Assembly: GCA_002269645.1 (NCBI GenBank)
Contig: NIVC01000236.1
Span: 62,001 to 126,000, forward strand
Reading direction: 5' to 3'
Source of the DNA: Macrostomum lignano
Lineage: Eukaryota
Length of the DNA: 64,000 nt
Positions 42,178-47,181 of the stretch are shown piece after piece. The position numbers were made by a program, and so were the translations under genes. Every line of letters starts with the position of its first letter. The stretch's first letter is position 1. Under the pieces are notes generated by a model, which saw only the letters and a list, made by a program, of their open reading frames with translations, had not been told where the DNA came from and searched no databases.

Positions 42178-45100
42178 TCACTCCAGGTACACCAGGAACC
42201 GGTCAGCAAAGAACGCGTTGCCTCGGCTGTACTTGCCGGGCTTCTTGGTGTACACAAGCACCGGGGCGGAGCCGCTCCAGCCCTTGTTGGCCCACTTGCA
42301 GGGGTCCCGCCTGTCCGACACCATCCAGAAGCCGAGGTCGCCAGCACAGCCGGCGTACACCTTGTTGATGAAGAAGGTCCGCTTGTGGGCGCGGTGGCCG
42401 GCAACAGAGAAGTAGTTGTAGCCGGTCTTGCCCAGGTGATAGGGGTAGGAGGAGACGAGGCGGGTCGGGGTGAACCAGTTCGTCATGCCCACCGATTTGG
42501 TGTGCCGGGAAACGTCGAAGACGACCTGGGCGACCCGGCGACCGTCGGAGCGCATCTCAGCGACAATCCGCTTGTAGCCGGTGTGGAGGAGGGTCCAGGC
42601 CAGCGCGTCCAGCTGGTCGGAGCGGTACAGGTCCGGCAGGGAGCGGTCGGCCGGGATGTCGCTGGGGCCCTTGGTTCTGAATGTTTTGAACACCTCGTGG
42701 CCAGCGCCGCTCTTGACGGTGTACAGCAGGGCCCTGTGCCCCTCTGCAGTGCCAGATATCGATAGCAAAGTTTTTCAAGAAAAGTTCTATTTAGGAAATT
42801 AATTTCTTAGCGGCTTACCAAAGTGGAACAGAGGAATCTTTGGCGCTGCTGGCTTCGGAACTTCATTTCTGTAAAGTGGGTGTTTCATTTATGCATCAGG
42901 ATTTGTGCTCTCATAAATAAACTTAAATGCATCACCGATGCTCATCTTCTGTGTTTTCTGGAGGCGGATCCAGCTTCAGGTACTTTTGAAGGATTTAAGC
43001 TAGGAACTTGCTCAAGTAATGCAGACACATCCCAAAGTATCCAGGTATTCAGACACAGCCCAGGGTATACAGGTGTGCAGACTTAGCCCAGATATCCCTG
43101 TCAGACAACTCACGCCAGGTAGACCAGGAATCGATCCGCATAGAATGCATTGCCCTGGCTGTACTTCTTGCCGGGCAGTCGGGTGTAGATCAGAGCCGGA
43201 GCCGAGCCGTGCCAGCCCTTGTACCCCCACTTGCATGGGTCCCGCCTGTCCGACACCATCCAGAAGCCGAGGTCGCCAGCGCAGCCAGCGTACACGCTGT
43301 TGATGAAGAAGGTCCGCTTATGGGCCTGGTGCCCGGCAACAGAGAAGTAGTTGTAGCCGCTCTTGCCCAGCTGATAGGGGTACGAGGAGACCAGTCGGGA
43401 TTTCGAGAACCAGTTGACCATGTTCAGTGACTTGGGGTTCCTGGACACGTCGAACACCACCTGCGCGACCACCTTGCCGTCGGTGCGCATCTCGGCCACC
43501 ATCCGCTTGTAGCCGGTCCGGTGGATGAGTGAGGGCAGGGTGTCCAGCTGGTTGGATCTGTACAGGTCGGGCAGCGACCGGTGTTTGGGAATCCGGTCGT
43601 AGGCGCGCGATCTGAAGGTGCTGTAGGCCGTCTTGCCGATGTGGCTTTTGATGGTGTACAGAAGGACCTTGTTTCCCTCTGAAATTGAGGCATAGTGCTT
43701 TGGATTAACACTCTGTAGCATAGGAGGAGCTGTGGAGTTGCTCAGGCTTACCAAATCGGAAAGTCGGAATGGGCAGAGGCGGAGGCCTCGGCACATGGTT
43801 CCTGCAAACATTAACGGTTCGCGCTGTTAAGTGTGCGCGTCTTTTATGCGGCTTGAACTATGAATGAGTGCAGAATCGCGGCAACTCACGCCATGTAGAC
43901 TATGAACCGATCGGCATAGTAGGCGTTGCTCTTGGCAAACGGAACGCCGGGCACCTGCGTGTACACCAGCACCGGGCCGGAACTGTGCCAGCCTTTGTTG
44001 GACCACTTGCAGACGTCTTTGCGGTCAGAAATAACCCAGAACCCGATGTCGCCGCCGCAGCCTCTGTAGCGATTGCTGATGAAAAAAGTTCGCTTGTGGG
44101 CCTGGTGACCGGCGAACGAGAAGTAGTTGAAGCCAGTCTTCTTCAACTTGTAGGGAAAGGACGAGACCATGCGAGCCGGAGTGAACCAGTTCTGGAAGTT
44201 CAGCGACTTGGTGTTGATTGAAACGTCGAAGACGACCTGGGCCACGACTCTGCTGCCAGCGCGCATTTCGGCCACGATGTGCTTGAAGCCGGATCGCTCC
44301 ACCGCGTTGGCGAGGGTGTCCAGCTGGTCAGACCGGTACAGCTTCGGCAGCGACCGGTCCGACGGGATCTCGTTGTTGCCTCTGTTCTTGAAGGTGGTGT
44401 ACACTTTCTCCCCGATGTTGCTCTTGATGGTGTACAGCAGGTTCTTGTTACCCTCTGCAGATGCCAATTGAATAGGAGCTGTGCATGAATAAGGCCCTAG
44501 GAACTACACTATCAGATAATAATAGAAATACCAAAGAAAGAATCGAAACACTGGCTCAGATTCCACTCCCCATCATATACATGTACCGTAAAACAAAAGT
44601 TCTGGTTAAAAACATTTCCAATCGGCTTTTGGCGGTTATTATTTAAGGATAGTATTGGATAATAAACTAGAAACATCCAACGCAGTCCATGTATACCATA
44701 GTGCTTGACAGTTGGTGAGAGCGCACAAAAAAGGCTCAGGATCTGGTAGAGAAGATGTGAAATTGGAGCTAAAATAGACAAAATCATAACCTTTCCACTG
44801 GAAATAATAAAAATCTTGTAGCCAATCTTGCTGGGGATGGAGGAGCTTGCCTGATCTGCGCTGCTCTATTTGGATGCAGCAAAAGATCCCGGAACCTGAA
44901 TGTACCGGCTTTACTTGGTTTTCCTATCGTTGATCTGCGTGTTACTCACCGAATCGGAAGACTGGAGGCAGCTCTGGATGAAGCTCTGGCACCTTTGATC
45001 TGCCGTGCAGGAAGAGAGGGAGTCAACTGTTAGCAAACTGAATGCATAATTGAATGTCTATGGCATCTTCACTGAGCTCAGCGCCACTTACGTCAGGTAC

Positions 45101-47181
45101 ACAATGAAACGGTCGGCGAAGAAGGCGTTGCCTTCGGAGTACCTCTTGTTGGGCACCTGCGTGTACACCAGCACCGGGGCGGAACCGTGCCAGCCTTTGT
45201 TATCCCAACTGCAGACGTCTTTGCGGTCAGAGACAACCCAGAACCCGACGTCGCCACCACAGCCTCTGTAGCGATTGTTAATGAAAAAAGTCCGCTTGTG
45301 GGCCTGGTGACCGGCGAACGAGAAGAAGTTGAAGCCAGTCTTCTTCAACTCGTAGGGGAAGGACGAGACCATGCGAGTCCGAGTGAACCAGTTCTGGAAG
45401 TTCAGCTTCTTCGTGTTGGTTGAAACATCGAAAACGACCTGGGCCACGACTTTGCTGCCAGTGCGCATTTCGGCCACTATTTTGCCGTACCCGGATCGCT
45501 TGACGGCGAAAGGCAAAGTGTCCAGCAGCTTCGAGCGGTAAAGGTTGGGAAGTTTCCCGTCCGACGGGATCATGGTGGTGCCCTTCTTTTTGAAAGTTTT
45601 ATATGCAGTCTGCCCGATGTTGCTCTTGATGGTGTACAGCAGAGCCTTGTCTCCCTCTGTAGGTGTAGGATAACAACTCTGTATATGATTCCATAAAGGT
45701 TGTGCAAAATTTTTAATAATTCCATGGACTTACCAAAGCGGAAGAACGGGTAGGGGACCGGACTCGGCTTGGGCGTTTCATTTCTGAAGATTTATTGGAA
45801 GTGGAGACTTGCATGCAGCGTCGATTAAAAAATCACCTTACCAATTAAGCAATCAAGGAGAGACTCACGTTAGATAGACCAGGAACCTATCAGCGTAAAA
45901 GGCGTTTCCCTGGCTGTACTTTATCCCGGATACCTGTGAGTACACCAGCTCCGGTGCAGAGCCCTTCCAGCCCTTTTTGGCCCAGCTGCACACGTCTTTT
46001 TTATCGGCGATCATCCAGAATCCAGTGTCGCCCGGACAGCCGCGGTACACGTAATTCACAAAAAATGTCCGTTTAAGGGCCTTGTGTCCGGCCATGGAGA
46101 AATAGTTGAAGCCAGTCTTGCCGATTTCGTAGGGGAATGACGACACTAGCCGAGTCGGCGAGAACCAGTTCATGAGGTTGAGGGTCTTCTTATTGGTTGA
46201 CACGTCGAATACGAGCTGCGCCACCACCCTGCCGTGCTTTCGCATCTCGGCAACAATCAGCTTGTAGTCGCCGATGTTCGAGCTGAGACTGTCCAGCTGG
46301 TCTGACCGGTACAACTTCGGCAGCGACTTCTTCGATGGGATCACGCGTTGACCTTTCGTCGTGTAGGTAGCGTACACTGTCTGGCCAATGTTGCTCTTTA
46401 TGGTGTACAGCAGGGCCTTGCCATCTTCTGCAAATACATAGTAATCATCGATGAAAATACATTTTTAGAAAAGCTGCATTTGACGCCACTTGACATCCGT
46501 TGGTCACTCACCAAAGTGAAATGCCTCGACCGGCTTTTCGCCCGCCTCTCCGGAACGCCAGTGAAACACGAACTGGTGCTCGTGAATGATGCCTACAAGG
46601 GTGAACTCCAGGAATCCGAACAGCCTCTGGCTCTGTGGGCTGTTAATTGAAAAGTAGCGCCTGACGCGCGAGCAGACCTTCTTTGAGTGGCAGTAGAAGT
46701 TCAACCAGAACTGTCCGCCCCTTTTCGTCACTGCAGACTTCACGCCGCGGCAAAGATTTCCACAGGCGACTCTTTGAACAAAGCGCGAGGTGATGGACTT
46801 CACAGGAAAGTTCATCCAGCTAATACTGGTCGAATGCGGCAGCTCGTAGTCGTTCTTGATGACCATCTCGAGGCTCACCCGATACCGGTGGTGATGCCGG
46901 TGCAGGACAGTGTCTTCGCCCATCACGACACCCAGCTGAGGCTCCACCACCCGGTAGCCGCGGAAGACGTGGTAGAATAGCTCCACCCCGTTGTGATTGT
47001 AGTGGTGGACGCCGGCCGCTGCCTCGCTTGCGGAATCTTGTGTCAAGCCTCCAATCTCGCCGTCCAGTCCGTCCAGCTCTTCCAAAGCGTCCACATCATC
47101 TAGCTGCTCTAACTTCACACCAGCTGAGACAGAAACACCTAAAATTAGAAGGAGCAGCAGCGATGCTGCTAGACGTCGCAT
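42178..47181 (-). CDS. Secreted 1229-aa protein: signal peptide, acidic stretch, unassigned N-domain, then five tandem ~187-aa domains joined by Pro-rich linkers. Exons 47181-46512, 46427-45869, 45783-45734, 45656-45092, 44999-44950, 44454-43890, 43801-43752, 43678-43114, 42868-42819, 42743-42178
   Basis: All nine introns have GT-AG ends and compatible phases; total 3690 nt = 1229 aa + stop. Signal peptide MRRLAASLLLLLILGVSVSA. The five exons encode clearly homologous domains (LLYTIKS..G, LYRS..LD, IVAEMR, VAQVVFDVS, NWF...R.VSS.PY, FS.AGH.A.KRTFF, Y.GC.GD.GFW, D.C.W..KGW, GNAFYADRF.VYL). AATAAA just after the stop. Confidence 0.88.

Follow-up and report, generated by a model that had tools for sequence, protein, structure and literature searches.

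A five-module gene of the flatworm Macrostomum lignano and the probable derivation of its unnamed domain from fibrinogen-related domains

We describe a gene of the marine flatworm Macrostomum lignano that lies on the minus strand of a 64,000-nucleotide stretch of contig NIVC01000236.1 (positions 62,001 to 126,000 of the forward strand; assembly GCA_002269645.1). The whole of this stretch is called the window below. Ten exons between window positions 47181 and 42178 encode a predicted secreted protein of 1229 amino acids, in which five modules of 185-187 residues follow one another in tandem. Judged by its profile matches, the module belongs to a large, widespread and unnamed extracellular domain family. 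We lean towards a reading in which it is a divergent unit of the kind found in fibrinogen-related domains (FReDs), without their subdomain A, and in which cassette duplication built from it a secreted, multivalent and cationic protein for binding or as a scaffold. New here are the placing of the module in a large family that has no model so far, a confident structural model of it, its probable descent from a FReD that lost subdomain A, and its amplification as a cassette in Macrostomum. Public protein sets of M. lignano do already contain the gene, but the names assigned to it automatically are meaningless.

Gene structure

The gene model was rebuilt independently through splice-site searches. 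All nine introns (73-495 nt) are of the GT..AG type, with 18 of 18 splice sites canonical, and the coding sequence of 3690 nt is in frame, with one stop codon and no frameshifts. Exon 1 (47181-46512, 670 nt) holds the ATG, the signal peptide and a head region of ~200 residues. Since it lies upstream of 46427, the gene reaches about 750 nt past the interval 42178-46427, where a sequence-only reading had placed five tandem copies of a domain of about 187 amino acids. A repeat search and tblastn recovered the same five copies, and the exon sizes and phases proved to be as that reading had given them.

Copy 1 is encoded by a domain exon of 559 nt (45869-46427; module R1, residues 225-409), which is followed by a linker exon of 50 nt (45734-45783; NETPKPSPVPYPFFRF). 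Then come domain exon 2 (565 nt, 45092-45656; R2) and linker exon 2 (50 nt, 44950-44999; SKVPELHPELPPVFRF), domain exon 3 (565 nt, 43890-44454; R3, the module whose structure was modelled) and linker exon 3 (50 nt, 43752-43801; NHVPRPPPLPIPTFRF), and domain exon 4 (565 nt, 43114-43678; R4) and linker exon 4 (50 nt, 42819-42868; NEVPKPAAPKIPLFHF). The fifth domain exon (42178-42743; R5) has 566 nt, that is, 563 coding nucleotides and TGA, and gives the C-terminus ..ADRFLVYLE. The architecture is one of four full domain+linker cassettes and a terminal domain exon, and the 3' end of exon 1 (..EAFHF, phase 1) serves as the linker ahead of copy 1. Phases alternate strictly, from 1 to 2 across domain exons and from 2 to 1 across linker exons. 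An AATAAA polyadenylation signal (42160-42165, minus strand) stands 12 nt 3' of the stop codon. One detail of the sequence-only reading had to be corrected. It had the linkers ending in F-(R/H)-F-G; they end in F-(R/H)-F-E, followed by Gly or Asp, because the codon split over the linker/domain junction is G/AG or G/AA.

The locus reads as an intact gene for a single polypeptide, as had been proposed, because the frame is continuous over ten exons, the phases match and no repeat has a start codon or signal peptide of its own. Two public M. lignano models represent the same gene, UniRef A0A1I8GIN4 (P0001) and A0A1I8I5N1 (P0151). The latter holds nine of the nine rebuilt exon junctions, and its main difference from our model is a deletion inside module 2.

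Protein layout

The first 20 residues (MRRLAASLLLLLILGVSVSA, 47122-47181, followed by GV) form a canonical signal peptide by their n/h/c-region pattern, as read by eye, and the C-terminus has no hydrophobic tail; the protein would thus be secreted. The remainder of exon 1 (46512-47121) encodes first an acidic stretch, then one rich in His, and then a region of about 150 residues with four Cys. The acidic stretch (LEQLDDVDALEELDGLDGEIGG) and the His-rich runs (HHYNHNG, HRHHHRYR) occupy residues ~22-100 (window 46950-47060, minus strand) and may represent a propeptide or serve in metal binding; the paralogues P0005 and P0011 lack the acidic stretch. Over residues ~58-223 the head can be aligned with the N-termini of P0005 (a M. 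lignano paralogue) and P0011 (a transcript) at 18-20% identity and with all four Cys invariant. The head region has no match in Pfam or PDB and no relatives past these two proteins (a word-indexed homologue search returned P0011 only), and it appears to be lineage-restricted.

Behind the head stand the five modules, with Pro-rich linkers of 16 residues between them. The modules are 62-75% identical at the protein level, R2/R3 and R4/R5 being the closest pairs. In a tblastn comparison of the assembled protein with the window the copies match each other at E 1e-68 to 1e-123, and no sixth or further copy is found elsewhere in the 64 kb. The repeat search showed five direct copies and three five-copy repeat families, all three restricted to coding parts; the introns of the different copies are not alignable above shuffled controls, in agreement with the earlier remark that they had diverged. 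Each module is basic and rich in aromatic residues (pI 9.8-10.1, K+R 14-16%, F+W+Y ~15%) and has exactly two Cys, in the context Y.GC.GD.GFW...D.C.W, much as first described. None of the five contains an N-glycosylation sequon. Across all ten module comparisons dS is 0.4-1.4 and dN/dS 0.19-0.40, which means that the duplications are old and that every copy is under purifying selection.

The module family

The sequence-only reading could not assign the module to a named family, and neither can we. Pfam gives nothing at E<=1 save sub-threshold noise, and no PDB sequence is matched by phmmer or by a profile of 77 family sequences. When a profile of the five modules was run exhaustively with HMMER against 1.84 billion representatives, 457 proteins were found at E<=1e-3 (70 at E<=1e-10 and 13 at E<=1e-30), each standing for a cluster at 50% identity. 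A word-indexed homologue search returned nothing with one module and only 10 proteins with the 77-sequence profile. The family profile matches over the full module (residues 3-187), with the motifs (W)xLxF.., NWF..R...S, NYFS.xG, R.FFIN..Y.GC..D.G(F)W....C.W and a terminal AD..x.(V/I/L). Residues F75, W89, F111, G115, R121, F123, C132, D135, G137, C148 and A180 are nearly invariant across the family.

Named members include M. lignano paralogues, proteins of Branchiostoma, Anneissia, Ptychodera, Mizuhopecten, Elysia and Pomacea, a Sushi protein resembling SVEP1, and a protein of a Myxococcota bacterium. The Branchiostoma members combine the module with EGF, ZP, FN3, C-type lectin, VWD, F5/8C, Kringle and ADAMTS parts. 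In Anneissia, a crinoid, its partner is TSP1, and in the scallop Mizuhopecten its partners are TSP1, LDLa and EGF; the hemichordate Ptychodera and two gastropods, the sea slug Elysia and the freshwater apple snail Pomacea, carry it too. The likeness to domains without a name in secreted marine-invertebrate proteins, suggested with the first description, is thus borne out. Members of bacterial type pair the module with FG-GAP, PKD, Big_9 and CarboxypepD_reg domains. In none of the family proteins examined does a Pfam model cover the module region.

Two leads to a known family were dropped. Pfam DUF7922 (32 bits summed over the four repeats of an amphioxus protein, P0013) was abandoned because a single repeat unit gives no match. 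A relative named ADAMTS20-like pointed to the GON domain and has no GON match; it owes its name to Reprolysin, TSP1 and ADAMTS-spacer domains and carries the module at its N-terminus.

The automatic UniProt names of M. lignano members (P0001-P0008, P0018, P0021) do not agree with one another and are plainly spurious: Peptidase_S9, MULTIHEME_CYTC, DUF4091, TSPc, CBM_X, Sema, Jacalin-type lectin and Exostosin are among them. Two members, P0005 and P0014, are called 'Fibrinogen C-terminal domain-containing', which suggests that the PROSITE profile PS51406 fires on some members. Among the listed M. lignano entries only the name of P0005 fits.

The link to fibrinogen-related domains

The clue to the origin of the module comes from a minority of its relatives. 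In 18 domain hits, from 14 relatives, the motif CDM..GGGWT, canonical for FReD subdomain A, stands directly upstream of the part matched by our profile; in the other 210 of the 228 family domain hits this piece is missing. Where a source is named, the relatives with subdomain A are bacterial (Myxococcota). All 16 A-bearing units tested (~225 residues each) match the NCBIfam model NF040941, 'fibrinogen-like YCDxxxxGGGW', with their first 44 residues. A profile of the A-bearing units also matches FReDs and intelectins of solved structure. The best of these is XEEL (4wmo_F, E 4.5e-10), and tenascin, fibrinogen beta, FIBCD1, MFAP4, FGL1 and intelectin-1 are matched as well. The aligned span is positions 1-66 of 223, reaching ~93 for angiopoietins and 133 for ANGPTL2.

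The flatworm modules can be connected to these units by profile-profile comparison with hhalign. Against 13 A-less relatives they align over residues 3-187 (99.9%, E 2e-33). The A-less relatives in turn align with the A-bearing units from the strand GW.maFR, equated with GGGWTMVxK, to the end (100%, E 1e-51). A direct comparison of the flatworm modules with the A-bearing units gives 99.6% and E 4e-24 over residues 58-187. By these links, the flatworm module corresponds to all that follows subdomain A in units that are unmistakably FReD-like over their first third. Subdomain A itself is absent from the modules in the window, which begin with ..K.LLYTIKS, the strand equivalent to GGWTMVxK. The transitive links overlap only over the module's first ~30-95 residues.

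The remainder of the module has its own motifs (NWF...S, NYFS.AG, KRTFFIN..Y.GC.GD.GFW...C.W and ADRF.VY). Its Cys pair brackets D-x-G-F-W (C132...C148 of R3) and aligns with C...GGWW...C of FReDs in a global alignment of low confidence only. A FReD origin would agree with where the disulfide lies, around a G-(F/W)-W loop, and with the returning last strand.

AlphaFold2 was given the translation of a single exon. With 77 family sequences it produced a confident model of R3 (pLDDT 96.3, pTM 0.92), an alpha/beta fold of about eleven strands and four short helices; with the five modules alone as the alignment pLDDT was 31. The structure prediction suggested for one repeat was thus successful, and the Foldseek search suggested along with it found no significant neighbour, as discussed below. 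On balance we consider it likely, though well short of certain, that the module as a whole descends from a FReD.

History of the cassette

The repeat unit measures 615 nt (565 + 50) and is symmetric, with phase 1 at both ends. In the window gene it was evidently duplicated whole, its internal phase-2 intron included. The gene had been described as built from a freely duplicable two-exon cassette. Its phase symmetry is borne out; its two-exon form is not general. P0162 (PAA51043.1, locus L002 on M. lignano contig NIVC01003514.1), a paralogue in which two modules follow the same head region, keeps the phase-1 intron before E-G-x-K, and there domain and linker form one continuous exon. The ancestral shufflable unit was therefore the domain+linker between phase-1 introns, rather than a two-exon cassette. 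Either the two-exon form is peculiar to the lineage of the window gene, or the internal intron was lost in the paralogue. At L002 (6001-18718) an intron of ~10.8 kb separates the first domain+linker exon from the second domain exon, as against 73-495 nt in the window gene.

The number of modules does vary among paralogues, a point raised for checking with the first description. M. lignano has paralogues with 2, 3, 4 and at least 9 modules, P0152 having nine full-length domains. The array is a clean textbook case of growth through duplication of a phase-symmetric exon unit.

A possible origin and role

The following scenario can be suggested. The protein would be a string of five beads, joined by Pro-rich linkers of ~16 residues and preceded by a signal peptide and the lineage-restricted four-Cys head. 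Each bead would be a compact alpha/beta domain with one disulfide beside the conserved D-x-G-(F)W loop. The family would most likely be a divergent branch of the FReD/intelectin superfamily, in which the N-terminal A subdomain (C...CDM..GGGWT) was lost and the C-terminal two-thirds were remodelled. The array would have grown by tandem duplication of the domain+linker unit with phase 1 on both sides, split here by an extra phase-2 intron, and all copies would afterwards have been retained under purifying selection.

If correct, the product may be a multivalent, strongly cationic (pI ~9.9) extracellular protein that binds or cross-links a repetitive and probably anionic ligand. The net positive charge suggests that such a ligand would be polyanionic and repetitive; glycans of mucus, matrix, gametes or microbes are candidates. 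The spacers are short, Pro-rich and probably stiff, and the disulfide-braced loop would be placed where FReD lectins hold their ligand pocket. Many members of the FReD/intelectin superfamily are lectins. The sequence-only reading had also arrived at a multivalent secreted binding protein. The signal peptide and five intact modules under purifying selection agree with the first two attributes; binding would follow from charge and kinship, and we give a binding or cross-linking role slightly less than an even chance.

A wider view, which is speculative and in our estimate doubtful, would be that a domain widespread and unnamed in marine invertebrates and bacteria, descended from a FReD without subdomain A, was amplified in Macrostomum (2 to at least 9 modules) into a new class of proteins that bind glycans or polyanions and serve mucus, reproduction, adhesion or immunity.

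Whatever the function is, the family deserves a name and a model. It comprises at least 457 clusters at 50% identity from flatworms, molluscs, echinoderms, hemichordates, cephalochordates and bacteria, a large extracellular family not modelled in current curated libraries. Modelling it would improve the annotation of 'uncharacterized' mosaic proteins of amphioxus and molluscs that contain ZP, EGF, TSP1 or ADAMTS parts. In M. lignano, a tractable model of regeneration and bioadhesion, it draws attention to an expanded set of cationic, secreted proteins with several modules each. The finding alone opens no long-standing question.

Points against and alternative explanations

Several results speak against the reading that we favour. 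Pfam Fibrinogen_C (PF00147) matches none of the five modules at E<=1, and the A-less relatives have no Fibrinogen_C or COLFI match either; the 2 of 77 family members that match Fibrinogen_C do so through their A subdomain. The D-x-D-x-D calcium motif that precedes the Cys in FReDs is not visible in the modules. A FReD profile was made from three sequences (angiopoietin-2, ficolin-2 and fibrinogen gamma, verified as exact against PDB chains). The whole A-bearing unit aligned with it at 97.2%; once subdomain A was removed, this fell to 7.5% over the first ~60 residues. FReD homology of the C-terminal two-thirds, including the Cys pair, is therefore plausible and not demonstrated. Foldseek finds no match to the module model at E<=1e-3 in PDB or BFVD. 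The top of its PDB list is dominated by C-terminal domains of fibrinogen, all weak (best 1fzd_A, E 0.71, TMq 0.36), with many beta and gamma chains at ~82 aligned columns and ~5 A rmsd. In BFVD the top TM-score belongs to a 'fibrillar collagen NC1' protein of a cyanophage; galectin-like matches (E>0.9, TM<0.2) are noise. The odd UniProt names given to M. lignano proteins mean that automatic labels there are unreliable. The public models that agree with our gene structure are gene predictions, not cDNAs. Finally, the literature, including a search for Macrostomum with fibrinogen, yielded no expression, localisation or binding data for the gene or its paralogues.

With regard to function, the protein could instead be a structural or secretory material (eggshell, cement gland, rhabdite or mucus, adhesive matrix) and its modules mainly cross-linkable bulk rather than specific lectin-like binders. 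The high pI, the aromatic content and the lack of N-glycosylation sites in the modules would suit such a material, as would the expansion to paralogues of 2 to at least 9 modules. Flatworm adhesives do employ large cationic repetitive proteins (PMC6410801). However, the modules are predicted to be well-folded globular units, they are under purifying selection and they are not of low complexity. The gene is distinct from the adhesive protein genes Mlig-ap1 and Mlig-ap2, and relatives in other phyla occur in typical receptor or matrix mosaic proteins. We regard a mainly structural role as the less probable one. The two roles are not mutually exclusive, and the inference of binding is somewhat better grounded because the module chains to the FReD/intelectin superfamily with its many lectins.

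With regard to descent, the module could be an independent new fold, and the GGGWT piece next to it in some relatives (bacterial where named) a product of the shuffling of two separate domains. This would explain why a model with a pLDDT of 96 has no significant structural neighbour in PDB or BFVD, and why no HH signal to FReDs extends past the first ~60 residues when subdomain A is taken away. NCBIfam treats the 46-residue GGGWT piece as a domain by itself, and most family domain hits, 210 of 228, do without it. Yet the FReD alignments of A-bearing units do not stop at the GGGWT strand; they cross it into the shared region, to position 66-133 of 223. The strand with which the A-less domain begins is precisely the equivalent of GGWTxx, part of the sheet of subdomain B in FReDs. 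The best Foldseek matches, weak as they are, are repeatedly fibrinogen domains, and the last strand follows a loop-rich disulfide insert as it does in FReDs (whose topology we take from general knowledge). An independent fold is in our opinion rather unlikely, and FReD descent of the whole module is preferred.

An assembly artefact or a decaying pseudogene, which might be feared in a window packed with minisatellites and a long interspersed element (LINE), and in view of public models of the same gene (P0001, P0004, P0006) with internal deletions and frameshifted variants, is very improbable given 3690 nt without stops or frameshifts, 18 canonical splice sites, a polyadenylation signal, and copies that differ by 25-38% in protein (dS as high as 1.4, dN/dS far under 1). 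The noisy variants P0004 and P0006 have no gene record.

Surroundings of the gene

The window is extraordinarily dense in minisatellite arrays, with periods of 6-66 nt and up to 125 copies, and several of them create long spurious open reading frames (ORFs). Examples are found at 6848-9634, 11137-12592, 18300-19068, 38137-40133, 40318-41082, 51118-51695, 57861-58442 and 60643-61650. Two arrays (16 nt x 125 and 12 nt x 60) lie within about 1-4 kb downstream of the 3' end of the gene.

Further away, 24581-25437 and 33979-34835 form an inverted repeat of 857 nt that is 99% complementary, with its arms 8.5 kb apart. The arms run outward into mirror-image arrays of 20/40-nt minisatellites (23587-24718 and 34729-35874). 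The repeat could be a foldback or terminal-inverted-repeat element, a nested insertion or an assembly palindrome. Between its arms, in an island of 70% GC, an ORF of 1298 codons (26227-30123, plus strand) encodes Exo_endo_phos (an APE-type endonuclease) and RVT_1 domains, which makes it a LINE-like retrotransposon without long terminal repeats. Near the start of the window two plus-strand ORFs (2417-3136 and 3173-5218) match Pfam EST1 and EST1_DNA_bind and probably represent exons of a gene like SMG5/6/7 or EST1; the second ends in a long tail that is acidic and of low complexity.

Comparison with known systems

We know several systems with which the module and its gene can be compared. Closest are the FReDs (PF00147), that is, ficolins, angiopoietins, tenascins and the C domains of fibrinogen beta and gamma. 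They are extracellular, and the start of the module is equivalent to their 'GGWTxxQ' strand. A beta hairpin in mid-domain, a single disulfide that brackets a G-(F/W)-W loop close to the C-terminal third, and a last strand that closes the domain would be further likenesses, and relatives of the flatworm module carry a bona fide A subdomain contiguous with it. The flatworm module differs in having no A subdomain, no Pfam match and no D-x-D-x-D; its C-terminal two-thirds are not alignable by HMM-HMM comparison, and the Foldseek TM is ~0.36. Valency is also arranged differently. FReDs form one C-terminal head that is oligomerised by a coiled coil or collagen, whereas the flatworm protein has five tandem copies per chain.

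Intelectins, or X-type lectins (XEEL, human intelectin-1), provide a precedent for an N-terminal part like that of FReDs joined to a strongly diverged remainder. However, the likeness of the relatives to intelectins is confined to the A subdomain (profile positions 1-54), which the flatworm modules lack, and there is no sign in these modules of shared residues for binding Ca2+ or exocyclic diols. The NCBIfam family NF040941 (GGGWT_bact) is matched by 16 of 16 A-bearing relatives, in which the ~185 residues that follow correspond to the flatworm module. Its 46-residue model spans only the part that is missing from the flatworm protein, and the shared downstream region is without a curated model. 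The fibrillar collagen C-propeptide (COLFI, PF01410) is weakly matched by three A-bearing members, and the phage NC1 protein has the top TM-score; in contrast, the flatworm modules have no significant match to it, and its Cys pattern and trimerisation features are absent from them.

Exon modules with phase 1 at both ends, in mosaic extracellular proteins, are the classical pattern of exon shuffling. The domain+linker unit of the window gene fits this pattern, being flanked by phase-1 introns at a boundary that is kept in the paralogue. It departs from it in the extra internal phase-2 intron, which was duplicated with the unit and is absent in the paralogue.

Within M. lignano itself, the known large adhesive proteins are Mlig-ap1 (5,407 aa) and Mlig-ap2 (14,794 aa), in which KR-rich regions are combined with C-type lectin, vWD, TSP1, EGF, LDL and TIL domains (PMC6410801). 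Identity with either was rejected: the protein described here has 1229 aa and none of those Pfam domains.

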